From Eutreptiella sp. 'Long Island Sound 2002' (taxonomy: Eukaryota > Protista > Euglenida), in assembly GCA_964036045.1 (NCBI GenBank), contig OZ038378.1:158224001-158288000 (forward strand): a stretch of 64,000 bases of DNA, read 5' to 3'. Below, one piece after another: positions 8,301 through 30,494 of this stretch. How positions within the stretch are numbered: the stretch's first letter is position 1; each line of letters starts with the position of its first letter. Made by a program: the position numbers and the translations under genes. The notes beneath the pieces were generated by a model. That model was not told where the DNA came from. It was given only the letters and a program-made list of their open reading frames with translations, and searched no databases.

Positions 8301-8485
8301 AGTGGTCCCGGACTGTGTGATTTCCTGAGAAGCAAATGAGGCACTGCACTGCCACATTGGCAGCCCAGCCTCGTTTGTTTGGGGTTAAGCCGCACACACG
8401 ATGGGAGCCGCAAACAAGAACAAAGCAAGAAAGCGGCGAAAGCAAACTCCTCAGGAGCTGCTGGGCAGCCCGAGACGTCTTACGC

Positions 8486-8787
8486 CACACACACACACAC
8501 ACACACCCACGCACACACACACACACACACACACACACACACACACACACACACACACACACACGCACACACACACACGCACGCACACACACACACACAA
8601 ACATACACACACACACGCACACACAAACACACACACACACACACACACACACACGCACACGCAAACACACACACACGCACACGCACGCACACACACACAC
8701 ACACACGCACACACACACACGCACACACACACACACACACGCACGCACGCACGCACACACACACACACACACACACACACACACACA
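8486..8787. repeat. (CA)n microsatellite with CG/AA interruptions
   Basis: Directly visible. Confidence 0.98.
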
Positions 8788-9050
8788 ATGCGAACTGCGA
8801 AAACAAGAACAGAGCAAGGAAAGTGGTGGAAGAAAACACCTCAGGAACAGCAGTGCTGTCCTAGGCGTCTTTCGGTCTGTCATAAAGCGTGGCAATGTGC
8901 AGCAGCGAATTTCAGTACAGTGGCCCCACTCCCTGACCTGCCCTGAGATATGTGCTGTGTTAACGACGGACCATGAAATTCACCTACGGAGGAGGTCGTG
9001 CCTTGTTCGTCGACTAATTGCAACCTGTGCTAGGTGCTTCCACCGAACTA

Positions 9051-10077
9051 CACACACACACACACACACACACACACACGCACACACACACACACACACG
9101 CACACACACACACGCACGCACGCACACGCACGCACGCACGCACGCACACGCACGCACGCACGCACGCACGCACGAACAAACACGCATGCACGCACGCACG
9201 CACGCACAAACATGCACGCCCGCCCGCCCGCCCACCCACCCACCCACGCACACACACACACACACACACACACACACACAGACACAGACACAGACACAGA
9301 CACACACACACACACACACGCACACGCACACACACACACACACACACACACAGACACACACACACACACACACACAGAGACACACACACACACACACACA
9401 CACACTCACACACACACACACACGCACACGCACACACACACACACACACACACACACACACACACACACACACACAGACACACACACACACACGCACACA
9501 CACACACACACACACACACACACACAGACACAGACACAGACACACACACACACACACACACACACAGACACACACACACACCCACACACACACACACACA
9601 GACACACAGACACACACACAGACACACACACACACACACACACACACACACACGCACACACACACACACACACACACACACACAGACACACACACACACA
9701 CACACACACACACACACACACACACACACACACACACACAGACACACACACACACACAGACACACACACACACCCACACACACACACACACAGACACACA
9801 GACACACACACAGACACACACACACACACACACACACACACACACGCACACACACACACACACACACACACACACGCACACGCACACACACACACACACA
9901 CACACACACAGACACAGACACAGACACACACACACACACACACACACACACACACACACACACACACAGACACACACACACACACACACACACAGACACA
10001 CACACACACACAGACACACAGACACACACACACACACACACACACACACACAGACACACACACACACACACACACAC
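9051..10077. repeat. ~1-kb compound (CA)n microsatellite with (CACG)n and (CAGA) variants
   Basis: Directly visible. Confidence 0.98.
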
Positions 10078-10390
10078 ATGCTTCATGCTTCATGCTTGCG
10101 GACGTACCAGGCCTGAGCCTGAGCCTACCACGAGACGTCCCGGTAGGTCATTGAGTCCAAGAGGAAGGCCATTATCAGACCTACCCCCGGTTGCCCCACC
10201 ACCTGCCCCGGAGATCCCCCCCTCACGCCCAGCAGGCAGTAGAGCCGGCCAGGATCCCCGTGCAGGTCTCCGCCACGGGCTCCACCTCTTAATTAATGCA
10301 CAACTCAACATGCAGCAACATGCAACACACGCAGACACACACATACACCACAAGGCGCCCCTTCCTCCACTGTATTCTCCTATCTCCCAG

Positions 10391-27353: not shown

Positions 27354-27410
27354 CGACAGGACTGTGGTAAGAGGAGGCAGAACATCAGCCGACGGTATGC
27401 AGGGGGGTAG

Positions 27411-29780
27411 TCACATGTTCCCATGGCCGCGATAGACAGCTTGAGAACCATGGTAGGCGGATGATGTCTCCCAGGAGCCTGCAGCTGGCAGGGAGGACTC
27501 ACGGTCACGATCTCCAAAGCGCGGGACATATCGAGGGTCGCGATGCGTGGGTCGCAGCTCCGCAGGCCGGGGTGGGCTAGGTGACCCTCGGGGACTCAGG
27601 TCCCTGTCCACGTCCCGGTAACTCGCCCGCCTGTCCTGCAGTGATGGCGGCAGGTCAGAGTAGCTGGAGTGACGGGCGTCAGAGAGGCGTCCGGGGGACG
27701 GGGAGCGCGCTGCATATGGAGGGGGGGGGCCATCCGTTGGCGGCCGCCGAGAGGGTGCTCTATGGCGCTTGGTAGGGCGCTCATCAAAGCGATGCTCATC
27801 CGGGGCCCTCTTGCTTGATGGAGGAGGGCGTAGGCTGTCTCCCCACTGCTTGCAGACACACTGCGTGGGGGGCGTCCATGGTCGGACAGGCGACCCATCC
27901 GGGTGGCAGGCACTCAAAGATGCCGTGAGATGGGGGGCCATGACGATTACGACGGACCCATCCATCCCAAGGCGCTGCCGCCAGGCCTGGGTGGGAATCA
28001 GCAGGCTACAGAACTTGACTGAGACGCCTCGCTGCATGAGGCCGGCTGGGGAATGAGGGCCGTGGACCGCACATTGAAAGAAGGCAGACGCTGCAGACAC
28101 AAAGGCTGGCCACGGTAACCCGTCTGCATTGGGGCTCAGGGTCATGCGCACCGCCGTGAGCGAGGCAGGGTCTGCCGGATATGGCTGGCTGGCCGGCAGC
28201 GATGTTGGGCCTGGAGAGACAGAGGGCACAGTGTGGATACCCAGCTGGCTAAGGACTGACGCCGTCCAGTTGGGAGCCGCACCATGCTTGCATCGATTGC
28301 TTACCGCCGTTTGAAGAGCTTTCAGAACAGACAGATGTCGCACATCCCCGACGAACTCAGCAATCGCTACCGCTAGGGTCGCAAAATCCTTGACGGACTC
28401 CAGATGGAACACTGGTATATCTTGCTCTTCCAGGGCTGCTATGTCGACCGCTATTTGGCACGCCAACGAACGCCACTTCGTGTCGGCATCAGTATTGCCT
28501 TGGATCTGTTTGAGGATGGCGAGGGTTGTCTGGCTTTTAACGGAGTCGGTGATGACAATGAGCTCTGATTCGTTGAGGTACCTGACCCAGGACATGAGGG
28601 CACACTTGATTCGTACTTGATCATTACCACTGGGCCACGAGAAGCTGGTGAGGCATGTTGAGAGCGATGGACCATCCCCCACTCGAAGAAGCTGCTGGCC
28701 CAACTTGTGCGTCGCCGGGTACGGGGATAGGAGCGTGTTGAGGTGCTCCACGGCCTTTTTCACGTACTCCGACGGGACATCGCTGGACGCCTCTGCAACC
28801 TTCAGCAAGATCTGCGGCATTGTCAGCTTGGAGGCCGTCTCAGACGGGAGGGCTATGCCGGCTGACAGCTCACCAGAGGGCTTGGCAGCGAGGTCCTCAC
28901 TGGCTCCAGCAGTCGACGGTCCTGCTGAACTCTGGCCTGAGGCAGACGAGAGAGATGCGGGAATGTCACGTGGCAGGAGGCCAGAGCTGTTGGGCCATGC
29001 ATCCCGGATTGCACGCTCCAGAACTTTTTCGCCGACTCCCCCAGCAGGCCCTGATTGCTCTGTGGCTTTGGGCTCCCATGAAAGCTTCTTTTTGTGCTGT
29101 TTGGCCACCCACTTATAGACTGAGACGCGGAACCAGAATAGGGACAGCACCACCTTCCCTTTGGATAGGGGGGTGACATCCCCGTTGACCATGTCAGAGA
29201 AGTGGTTGGGGTCAGTCGTCAGCAATGTGCGGACTGCATCCGCCACCTCAGGAACGGGGATGCCACTGATGACCTCTGCGTGCAGAATGCTACGGGTCGC
29301 CCCAGACACAGAGGGCAGATTGTCCCGGAGATAAGCAACCGCCTCCAGCCATGTGCCCCAATACCATGTCGGCAGGTCGCGGTTGAGGAACGCAATATCC
29401 ACTGCCGGAAGCTTTCCCAAGATGACGCTCCATAGAAGGGGGAATGATCGGGCCCATGCTGACGTTAGAGGCACCCCCGATACTTCTGTTTTGTCCTGCT
29501 TGATGGCGGTCAGTTTCAGCACACCATCACGATCCTCTATCCTGGGGATGTACACAACTTGCTCAGGCTGGAGATGCAGGGCCGCTTGGCTCATTGACAT
29601 GACTGCGGTGGTCTGCAGACCGGCAAACACAGGGACGGAGAATGAAGGGAGAGCTGGCACAAGACCTGCAACAGCAGCACTGTGACAAGGAGCACGATGA
29701 AGGGCAGATGCCACCACGGAAGATGACGACGTCACACCGCTGGCTGGCGACTGGCATCGTACCAGACATCTGTGTAGCAA
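27411..29780 (-). CDS. ORF1 protein of unknown fold (open frame 789 codons; first ATG at 29600 gives 729 aa), with an Arg/Ser/Asp/Pro-rich C-terminus
   Basis: Long open frame in the ORF1 position upstream of ORF2. No gag CCHC knuckle or RRM was recognised by eye. Confidence 0.8.
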   Translation of the reverse strand: MLHRCLVRCQSPASGVTSSSSVVASALHRAPCHSAAVAGLVPALPSFSVPVFAGLQTTAVMSMSQAALHLQPEQVVYIPRIEDRDGVLKLTAIKQDKTEVSGVPLTSAWARSFPLLWSVILGKLPAVDIAFLNRDLPTWYWGTWLEAVAYLRDNLPSVSGATRSILHAEVISGIPVPEVADAVRTLLTTDPNHFSDMVNGDVTPLSKGKVVLSLFWFRVSVYKWVAKQHKKKLSWEPKATEQSGPAGGVGEKVLERAIRDAWPNSSGLLPRDIPASLSSASGQSSAGPSTAGASEDLAAKPSGELSAGIALPSETASKLTMPQILLKVAEASSDVPSEYVKKAVEHLNTLLSPYPATHKLGQQLLRVGDGPSLSTCLTSFSWPSGNDQVRIKCALMSWVRYLNESELIVITDSVKSQTTLAILKQIQGNTDADTKWRSLACQIAVDIAALEEQDIPVFHLESVKDFATLAVAIAEFVGDVRHLSVLKALQTAVSNRCKHGAAPNWTASVLSQLGIHTVPSVSPGPTSLPASQPYPADPASLTAVRMTLSPNADGLPWPAFVSAASAFFQCAVHGPHSPAGLMQRGVSVKFCSLLIPTQAWRQRLGMDGSVVIVMAPHLTASLSACHPDGSPVRPWTPPTQCVCKQWGDSLRPPPSSKRAPDEHRFDERPTKRHRAPSRRPPTDGPPPPYAARSPSPGRLSDARHSSYSDLPPSLQDRRASYRDVDRDLSPRGSPSPPRPAELRPTHRDPRYVPRFGDRDRESSLPAAGSWETSSAYHGSQAVYRGHGNM

Positions 29781-30350
29781 GCAGAAGCGCAGTGCAAGAG
29801 CGCTGCAGTGCAGGGGAAGTTCACAGTACAGTTATCAGTCCCTGCAGCCCCCGTTCTCGGTGCTGGGATACGATTCACGACCCTGCAAGTGCAGCAACGA
29901 TGCAGCGGAGTGCGTGTGGGGGGGGGGGGGGGGTTTGGCTGTAGCTGTTGTTCTGTTGCGCTGGTGGCCCCTGTTCCACCCTTCCCGTTTTCTGTCGCGC
30001 TATGTGTAGTGCGAGAAAAAGAACTCAGGGAGCCTGTTGACGGCGGCCCAAAAACGGTCATGTGGTGCAGTGAGCCAGCTGGGGACAGGTGGCACTGCCA
30101 ACTGGGCCCTGGGACCGTGAGTAGATCCCCCGGATGGGCCATTGGCTGGACGGGGCAGTGCAGCCCAGCACCTCAGCCGTGGGCGGTCTGCCCTGTGGAA
30201 GGGGGGGGGGGTCGGGGTTGCATTTCACCCTGGACCGGCTCAGGGCTTATGCACGACACCGTTAGCACCCCCGCCGCAGGCGGGAGCCCAGGCCCTGTCG
30301 TTCGGGGCTCCGCACCTGGTCACCATCCCGTTGTGGGTGGCTAGCTCGGC

Positions 30351-30494
30351 GCACACACACACACACACACACACACACACACACACACACACACACACAC
30401 ACACACACAGACACACACACACACACACACACACACACACACACACACAGACACACACACACAGACACACACACACACACACACACACACACAC
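30351..30494. repeat. (CA)n microsatellite at the 5' junction of copy 2
   Basis: Directly visible. Confidence 0.98.

Follow-up and report, generated by a model that had tools for sequence, protein, structure and literature searches.

This study concerns a 64-kb window of the genome of the euglenid Eutreptiella sp. 'Long Island Sound 2002' (assembly GCA_964036045.1, contig OZ038378.1, positions 158,224,001–158,288,000), in which a long (TG)n microsatellite alternates with copies of retroelements that lack long terminal repeats (non-LTR retroelements). All positions below are those of the whole 64-kb window. The elements lie on the minus strand, and the tracts are written as CA when read on the plus strand and as TG when read on the sense strand.

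Organization of the array

Between positions 8390 and 30494, six CA tracts (102–1029 bp on the plus strand) are interleaved with six retroelement copies, all of them on the minus strand. The tracts were located by Tandem Repeats Finder and direct reading; they sum to 3147 bp and have a CA dinucleotide content of 84–98%, and (TG)n outside the array makes up 0.16% of the window. This alternation of tracts and elements is far beyond chance. The same analyses confirmed an earlier reading of the DNA made from its letters (the sequence-only reading), which had reported CA tracts alternating with elements over 22 kb and had quoted the element tails, all of which are in place. The long open reading frames (ORFs) of the array blocks are all on the minus strand, indicating that the sense strand is the TG strand.

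Read in the sense direction (all coordinates on the minus strand), the array is bordered upstream by unique DNA, which begins at 30495, and opens with a 143-bp TG tract (30352–30494). This is followed by a full-length long interspersed nuclear element (LINE), copy 2 (21782–30349), a 102-bp TG spacer (21680–21781) that separates the two LINE copies, and the full-length, 8568-bp copy 1 (13112–21679). Next come a 1007-bp tract (12105–13111), the 560-bp element Bs (11545–12104), a 564-bp tract (10981–11544), the 902-bp element A (10079–10980), and a 1029-bp tract (9050–10078) with 27 CAGACA and 23 CACGCA variants. The downstream end consists of the 262-bp element C (8788–9049), a 302-bp tract with many CACGCA variants (8486–8787), the 86-bp element C' (8400–8485), and a 10-bp TG remnant (8390–8399), which was read directly as ccgcacacac and has unique sequence to its left. 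All array tracts except one carry the CAGACA variant. The sequence-only reading had listed element A, an element B (our Bs), and the two long copies, and these stand; it had overlooked C and C'. Its proposal that several distinct retroelement families occupy one (CA)n/(TG)n tract is borne out by the four families in the window.

The element ends meet the tracts at sharp junctions. On the plus strand, element A starts with ATGCTTC ATGCTTC ATGCTTG, element B with three ATGTC units, and the long copies with three AGGTC units and AGGT. In sense, these are the tails (AAGCATG)x3 of A (10079–10099), (GACAT)x3+G of Bs (11545–11562), and (ACCTG)x3+ACC of LINE copy 1 (13112–13129). The 3' junction on the plus strand is ...CA|tail for A, B, and both long copies, as had been described. 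The return to CA at the 5' junctions was also described correctly, but the fixed phase was not, because the phase varies (CTCGG|CACA, CTCGG|CG|CACA, and CTTGG|ACACA). In LINE copy 2, the 5' end is separated from the TG tract by two extra bases (CG on the plus strand, 30350–30351), and across loci the sense 5' junctions read TG|, GT|, GA|, or CG| ahead of the common first bases CCGAGC. Phase specificity is therefore not supported: the 5' phase varies, and the 3' phase is unreadable as tail and target both supply TG.

The window locus has a second record. Locus L006 (contig ctg8353, 171 kb) matches window positions 3929–28679 with 1 mismatch and 7 indels over 24.8 kb, and the differences concern only TG-unit counts and homopolymer lengths; an ion channel protein encoded in the window was likewise assigned to ctg8353. 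This agreement indicates that the order, number, and orientation of the array members are reproducible, which does not extend to exact tract lengths. The locus lies at 87–112 kb of the 171-kb contig, at least 59 kb from either contig end, and the array is therefore interstitial. Microsatellites of 1 kb and two near-identical 8.6-kb copies are hard to assemble, and the tract lengths are uncertain, which could raise the suspicion of a spurious array, produced when repeats were collapsed or chained during long-read assembly. We consider such an artifact extremely unlikely, given the concordance of the second record in all but TG-unit and homopolymer counts, the presence of similar arrays on three other contigs, and the 11 substitutions that separate the two long copies.

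Long G or C homopolymers (up to ~20 nt) occur at 21520–21545, 30193–30212, and 30940–30985. Two of them are in the LINE 5' untranslated region (UTR), and their lengths are not the same in copies 1 and 2. All three stretches are likely places of sequencing or polishing uncertainty. The only other CA/TG-type repeats in the window are a compound CA-rich repeat at 62970–63078 (CACACACCTA-like units), which no retroelement end adjoins, and (GT)14 at 51361–51388.

Two sister copies of an APE-type LINE

The two long copies belong to a LINE family that we call FL. Comparable relatives, here and below, all come from metagenome assembly ENA ERZ25074135 and were reached via protein clusters, with no selection on their flanks. 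Over 8.57 kb, copy 1 is separated from copy 2 by 11 substitutions and 5 indels, with 99.87% identity at aligned bases. They are mutual closest relatives, with 11 differences between them versus 43–68 to other copies, they share 62 differences against the copy at locus L005, and their tails are identical in length. The 5' end of copy 1, CCGAGCTAGCC, abuts the TG tract directly. In copy 2 both ORFs are open, whereas copy 1 lacks 5 bp of the copy 2 sequence near 19038, which frameshifts the end of its ORF1. Two full-length copies had indeed been recognized by the sequence-only reading; counting them as two insertions is not supported, as they are sisters that could have arisen from one insertion and a tandem duplication.

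This raises the question of whether most of the growth of the array was due to unequal crossing-over or segmental duplication between TG tracts, with only one or two insertions at the outset. The sister relationship of the long copies (11 substitutions and 62 shared differences), their identical tail length, the single-base difference at their 5' junctions, and the occurrence of the CAGACA variant in all tracts but one are what exchange would produce. Yet the remaining four members come from three unrelated families (Bs, A, and C), something that duplication cannot make, and at three other loci TG tracts hold the same families, combined differently. Duplication accounts at most for the pair of long copies, and as an explanation of the array it is unlikely.

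ORF1 of copy 2 (27411–29600, minus strand) encodes 729 amino acids from its first ATG; a Pfam search detected no domain in ORF1, and its C terminus is rich in Arg, Ser, and Pro. It ends in a single TGA (27411–27413) in frame with ORF2, whose open frame starts at 27410, directly after this stop. ORF2 encodes 1585 amino acids in copy 1 (13925–18682, minus strand) and, counted from the first ATG, in copy 2 (22596–27353, minus strand). It comprises a Cys-rich N-terminal extension, an apurinic/apyrimidinic-type endonuclease (APE), a reverse transcriptase (RT), an RNase H-like domain, and a C-terminal CCHC motif.

Several lines of evidence support this assignment. Residues 325–523 match Pfam Exo_endo_phos (E = 9e-9), and a profile search with ORF2 against the PDB returned only LINE-1 endonuclease chains (E = 1e-10); chains named after R1 or TRAS were absent up to E = 1. 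The Pfam RVT_1 model misses the window ORF2 but detects three of six relatives. In an alignment of the six relatives (27–39% identity), the APE catalytic, RT QGDS and FxDD, RNase H D/E/D/H, and CCHC columns are invariant. An AlphaFold model of residues 310–1470 reached a mean predicted local distance difference test (pLDDT) score of 84.7, and its best Foldseek match was full-length human L1 ORF2p including the endonuclease (E = 1.4e-26 over 1041 columns), followed by R2 proteins (E = 1e-15). The FL ORF2 is thus a genuine APE-type LINE ORF2, with the APE domain N-terminal to a LINE-type RT, and the Foldseek match makes target-primed reverse transcription (TPRT), which the sequence-only reading had invoked, a natural mechanism for it. 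Further hallmarks of LINEs are the defined 3' end, 5' truncation (element A and locus L004), and target-site duplications of variable sequence (13 bp at L005 and 14 bp at L009). No terminal repeats of the LTR type were seen in a self-comparison. Among 5.8 billion proteins, word-indexed searches with ORF2 and a 22-sequence profile, together with cluster look-ups, returned no named or accessioned relative; an exhaustive HMMER search gave 209 representatives at E < 1e-30, all of them unnamed fragments.

Three features of the LINE were observed in addition. ORF2 residues 1–320 (17723–18682, minus strand) contain CxxC...CxxC and CxxCxR...C...C motifs that are conserved across the clade, and this extension may be a zinc-binding nucleic-acid-binding domain; its AlphaFold model (pLDDT 50) is too poor for a fold. 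ORF1 and ORF2 share one frame and are parted by one TGA followed by CTN (CTA, CTG, or CTC) in window copy 2 and at L005, L008, L009, and L012, and the L002 family has TGA TAC in this position. The in-frame arrangement occurs in five families with ORF2 21–63% identical, and protein conservation (an LP..[IL]P motif) begins directly after the TGA, ahead of the first ATG. This pattern suggests programmed UGA read-through that would yield an ORF1-ORF2 fusion; a reassigned TGA codon is less likely because TGA also terminates ORF2 in two families. Finally, the first 320 nt of the 5'-UTR (21357–21679 in the window) are 76–83% identical to L008:2871–3189 and L009:2904–3255, and the coding DNA of these LINE families is only ~65% identical. 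Conservation of this kind suggests an internal promoter or a 5' RNA element.

Non-autonomous elements Bs, A, and C

The sequence-only reading had counted A and B among several retroelement families; we found both to be non-autonomous elements and not separate autonomous families. Bs is a discrete 560-bp element with a 167-bp internal duplication. A second copy (L008:1756–2315) is 99% identical, has the identical 5' start CCAAGTCAGG, and is likewise situated between TG tracts. The 3' 270 nt of Bs are 84% identical to the 3'-UTR of LINE family B, a full-length family present at L003, L008, L010, and L011 whose ORF2 is 63% identical to that of FL, and the (GACAT)n tail is common to both. The 5' head of Bs (12020–12104, minus strand; CCAAGTCAGGCCGG...) resembles L002:2468–2560, the sequence after a minisatellite. 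Bs may therefore be a chimera of the 5' end of one family and the 3' end of LINE B.

Element A is a 5'-truncated copy of a non-coding element of 1.36–1.49 kb and has no long ORF on its sense (minus) strand. Two full-length copies (L007:8915–10270 and 10529–12022) start with ACTGGTACC directly after TG tracts and have the tail and orientation of the window copy. An internal 46-bp tandem repeat (10473–10941) varies in copy number between the window, L007:9500–9876, and L007:11114–11628, and perhaps also between the two records of the window locus. A LINE partner with the AAGCATG tail was not found among the surveyed loci.

Element C is non-coding and has no tandem tail, ending in ...CGCATT followed by GTGTG. 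C' is a 5'-truncated copy of this short non-autonomous family: it is 78% identical to the 3' 77 bp of C, has the same orientation, and runs into GTGTGTG in sense. C-related pieces in the same orientation are also found in degenerate TG tracts at L011:3629–3718 and 5052–5141.

A shared 3' module and short tandem-repeat tails

An RNA module of ~135 nt just upstream of the tail is common to FL, its sister family cl3, B, and Bs. In the window, it occupies 13130–13263 in copy 1 (minus strand; a stem-loop with a GACGTCT core, 150.6 bits with a covariance model) and 21800–21933 in copy 2 (minus strand). RNAalifold predicted 27 pairs, 7 of them with compensatory changes, and 93.6% of the alignment cells are paired, compared with 27–56% when the partners are slid. 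The two terminal helices are 94–100% paired and include five compensatory pairs. This is suggestive of a conserved 3' stem-loop, although it falls short of proof with only three or four independent lineages contributing. Applied to 243 kb, the covariance model found the 12 3' ends that were expected and no more, that of Bs (11543–11692, E = 1e-32) among them; those of A, C, and the L002 and L012 families were not picked up.

The tails consist of 3–5 units of ACCTG (FL and cl3), GACATG (B and Bs), AAGCATG (A), ACCCTG (L002 family), or CCTGAA (L012 family), and the first four of these units all finish in TG. In addition, the 3'-UTRs of FL, cl3, B, and Bs carry an internal (UG)4–7 run just upstream of the stem-loop. 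By sequence and predicted folding, LINE B and Bs have in common both the structured 3' end and the tail of short tandem repeats, which is not established for A or C.

Targets and polarity at other loci

We compared the surroundings of all copies at the surveyed loci. For FL, the two window copies are in (TG)n, and the L007 copy has (TG)n on both sides. The tail of the L001 copy (658–669 kb of a 936-kb contig) is joined to (TGGGTG)98, with the junction ACC|TGGGTG, and the L005 copy is in unique DNA with a clean 13-bp target-site duplication, TGAACCGCACCAT. For LINE B, the copies at L008 and L011 have (TG)n on both sides, that at L010 is inside (GGGTGAGT)n with the junction CATG|AGTGGG, and that at L003 is inside a 47-bp satellite next to (GTGGT)n, with a duplication of about TGCCTSACTGCC. 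Both copies of Bs (window and L008) and all three copies of A (window and two at L007) are in (TG)n. The cl3 copies, with the ACCTG tail, are in unique DNA at L004, where the copy is 5'-truncated, and at L009, with a 14-bp duplication. More distant elements are the L002 family (43% identical), present as tandem head-to-tail copies in a TGG-rich 27–30-bp minisatellite, and the distant L012 family, in unique DNA.

As an outcome that would speak against it, the sequence-only reading had named a majority of copies outside (CA)n or in random orientation. This outcome was not observed: for the FL and B lineages, 7 of 11 copies and 4 of 8 loci are in (TG)n. Among the FL, B, and Bs ends found with the covariance model in the 243 kb, the proportion is 7 of 10. 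(TG)n makes up at most 2.7% of the surveyed loci, an upper bound as these loci are biased, and at p = 0.027 the probability of this enrichment is about 1e-9. Scans of JGI metagenome contigs for a wider census gave no matches. The claim of microsatellite specificity fails, because the same families also occur in (TGGGTG)n, in (GGGTGAGT)n, in the 47-bp satellite, and in unique DNA with the 13-bp duplication. With four of the 11 FL and B copies elsewhere (L005, L001, L010, and L003), insertion is not restricted to the AC/TG repeat; (TG)n is the preferred, not the exclusive, target.

Polarity was uniform. As had been proposed for the window, sense corresponds to the TG strand, and this holds for 12 of 12 copies within (TG)n, six in the window and six at three further, independent loci (three at L007, two at L008, and one at L011). 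If the two long copies are taken as a single event, the count is 11 of 11 (two-sided p of about 0.001). Copies in the other G/T-rich repeats likewise have the G/T-rich strand as their sense strand. These data bear on the possibility of passive accumulation, in which insertion is random and copies are preferentially retained where a repeat region is dispensable and recombines little, as has been argued for Waldo-A and Waldo-B near CA repeats in Drosophila (PMC3812793). The truncated and frameshifted copies in the window array and the presence of the same families outside (TG)n (L005, L001, L010, and L003) would fit this scenario. However, it predicts random orientation, and the polarity observed is fixed. 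Moreover, the boundary between element and tract is exact on both sides, at the full-length 5' end as well as at the tail, and the long copies are young (98.9–99.9% identical), leaving little time for selective sieving. We therefore regard passive accumulation as very improbable.

Where the target is readable, it starts with TG, overlapping the TG that closes the tail unit. TG is present in the target in the 5' copy of the L005 duplication, and the insertions in the three other repeats (L001, L010, and L003) are compatible with a target starting with TG. The tracts that adjoin elements measure 82–1540 bp, compared with at most 50 bp for element-free (TG)n in the ~200 kb surveyed. This difference, together with the template slippage on a 3' repeat documented for UnaL2 (PMC1636434), would be consistent with a self-made target, in which (TG)n is synthesized in a telomerase-like manner by an RT that slips at the UG closing the tail. 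The sequence-only reading had similarly held that the system regenerates its own target. This is not supported by the insertions outside (TG)n, in all four of which the tail is followed immediately by the target, without an intervening TG run. The tail copy number is also constant at 3–5 units, and TG tracts are found 5' of full-length elements, beyond the reach of slippage during TPRT. A self-made target is therefore very unlikely.

Other arrays were noted in the survey. At L002:1–16869 (ctg8337, 164 kb), LINE copies with an (ACCCTG)n tail are arranged head to tail with 1.7–2.6 kb of minisatellite between them, and the contig carries six cluster members (ORF2 copies and fragments). This is a second polarized LINE-plus-satellite array in the same genome, and a larger one. 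A (GTTGT)73 array is located near the distant LINE relative at L012 (L012:18433–18800), and G/T-rich simple repeats seem to be common in this genome.

Other sequences in the window

Outside the array, positions 33138–37898 (minus strand) encode an intronless protein of 1586 amino acids with four Ion_trans repeats, a four-domain cation channel with at most 22% identity to any of 5.8 billion proteins, which suggests that the host lineage is deeply unsampled. A 281-amino acid ORF at 44887–45732 (plus strand) matches Pfam RVT_1 (E = 2e-19), is unrelated to the array elements, and recurs at L009:16024–17163; it is a fragment of another retroelement. An ORF at 53846–54736 (minus strand) has a rhomboid protease domain (E = 1e-7). 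Ten further ORFs of the window had no Pfam match, and an Rfam search of the window detected no RNA gene.

Discussion

The array was invaded at least five times, in one direction, by four non-LTR families. We consider it likely that it represents one long interstitial (TG)n microsatellite hit repeatedly by related APE-type LINEs and their non-autonomous partners, via TPRT primed from a CA-3' end. Because ORF2 is of the APE type, TPRT from a nicked C/A strand is the natural mechanism. The endonuclease would nick the C/A-rich strand and expose a ...CA-3' end, which could prime reverse transcription after pairing with the UG that closes the RNA tail. In (TG)n, such sites would recur at 2-bp intervals and be confined to one strand, which may explain both the enrichment and the fixed polarity, and other G/T-rich tandem repeats would be targeted as well because they offer the same CA-3' site. 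Each insertion would split the tract and leave two usable tracts, so that successive insertions, perhaps with unequal exchange between tracts, would produce a head-to-tail array. The non-autonomous elements might be mobilized in trans via a common 3' module, the sharing of which is shown only for Bs and LINE B; the identical ends of Bs at two loci and its LINE B-type 3' module and tail argue for such mobilization.

Several points weigh against this interpretation. The census is small, comprising eight loci for two LINE lineages from one assembly reached via protein clusters, and copies that share an array do not count as independent. Within (TG)n, the junction phase and any target-site duplication are unreadable. 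The two long copies may represent a tandem duplication rather than two insertions; one insertion followed by unequal exchange between tracts, or local re-insertion, may each have produced the pair. The model gives no explanation for why element-adjoining tracts are so much longer than element-free ones; possible causes are that longer tracts are larger targets, that tracts grew afterwards through exchange inside arrays, or a combination of the two. Family cl3, with an ORF2 62% identical and the same ACCTG tail, is in unique DNA at both of its loci (L004 and L009), indicating that the tail does not dictate the target. Finally, a 2-nt microhomology alone cannot yield an enrichment of more than 100-fold, and an extra determinant must exist. 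Candidates are a sequence or structure preference of the endonuclease, non-B DNA in G/T-rich repeats, and the internal (UG)n of the 3'-UTR.

A broader interpretation would join three elements: a clade that homes to many G/T-rich repeats via the C/A strand, polarized LINE-satellite domains of the chromosome, and an ORF2 made by UGA read-through. The clade would then use the CA-3' primer plus some non-B or single-strand feature, and the domains would be a structural component of the chromosome. We put this forward tentatively, as a doubtful combination.

CA-primed insertion into (TG)n would be a further case of a known habit, that of repeat-targeting LINEs, and not a new mechanism. APE-type LINEs aimed at microsatellites include MinoAg1 (AC), Waldo (ACAY), Kibi (TC), Koshi (TTC), and Dong (TAA) (PMC3812793). 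FL resembles MinoAg1 and Waldo in being an APE-type non-LTR element in AC-type microsatellites (PMC3812793). MinoAg1 and Waldo, members of the insect R1 clade, are reported to be sequence-specific, whereas FL and B show a preference for the tract; FL has no named relative in the databases searched. FL also differs in its Cys-rich N-terminal extension, RNase H, and tails of 5–7-nt repeats, and the tract described here is shared by several families, including non-autonomous ones. Kibi, Koshi, and Dong belong to other clades and use other repeats, with a single family per target.

The TRAS and SART elements of Bombyx mori provide a closer parallel in one respect, as several LINE families accumulate in one simple repeat in fixed orientation; their target choice is attributed to the APE endonuclease and the RNA 3' end. 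Their target is the terminal (TTAGG)n, whereas the array described here is interstitial, in (TG)n or another G/T-rich repeat. Polarized head-to-tail arrays of several non-LTR families are also formed by HeT-A, TART, and TAHRE in Drosophila, where they replace telomerase. Head-to-tail arrays like those of HeT-A and TART are seen in the window (four families), at L007 (FL, A, A), at L008 (Bs, B), and at L002. However, HeT-A, TART, and TAHRE attach to chromosome ends and have no repeat target, and nothing in our data points to a chromosome end.

The organization of the 3' end has a counterpart in the eel element UnaL2, which has a stem-loop and a (UGUAA)n tail, usually of three units, and for which experiments showed that reverse transcription initiates in the repeat (PMC1636434). 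UnaL2 and UnaSINE1 also exemplify a LINE and a non-autonomous partner that share their 3' end (PMC1636434), a layout that FL, B, and Bs appear to follow. Unlike FL and B, UnaL2 is a vertebrate element of the L2 clade that has no repeat-targeting habit.

To our knowledge, repeat-targeting LINEs are known mostly from animals, usually with one family per target and strict specificity. In the microbial eukaryote studied here, one microsatellite is host to at least two autonomous lineages together with three non-autonomous families. The combination of a microsatellite target with readable insertions outside repeats makes a long-standing question testable, that of the respective shares of the endonuclease and of pairing between RNA tail and nick in target choice. 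More generally, what looks like a kilobase-scale microsatellite block in a long-read assembly can turn out to be a nest of retrotransposons and not just simple sequence.

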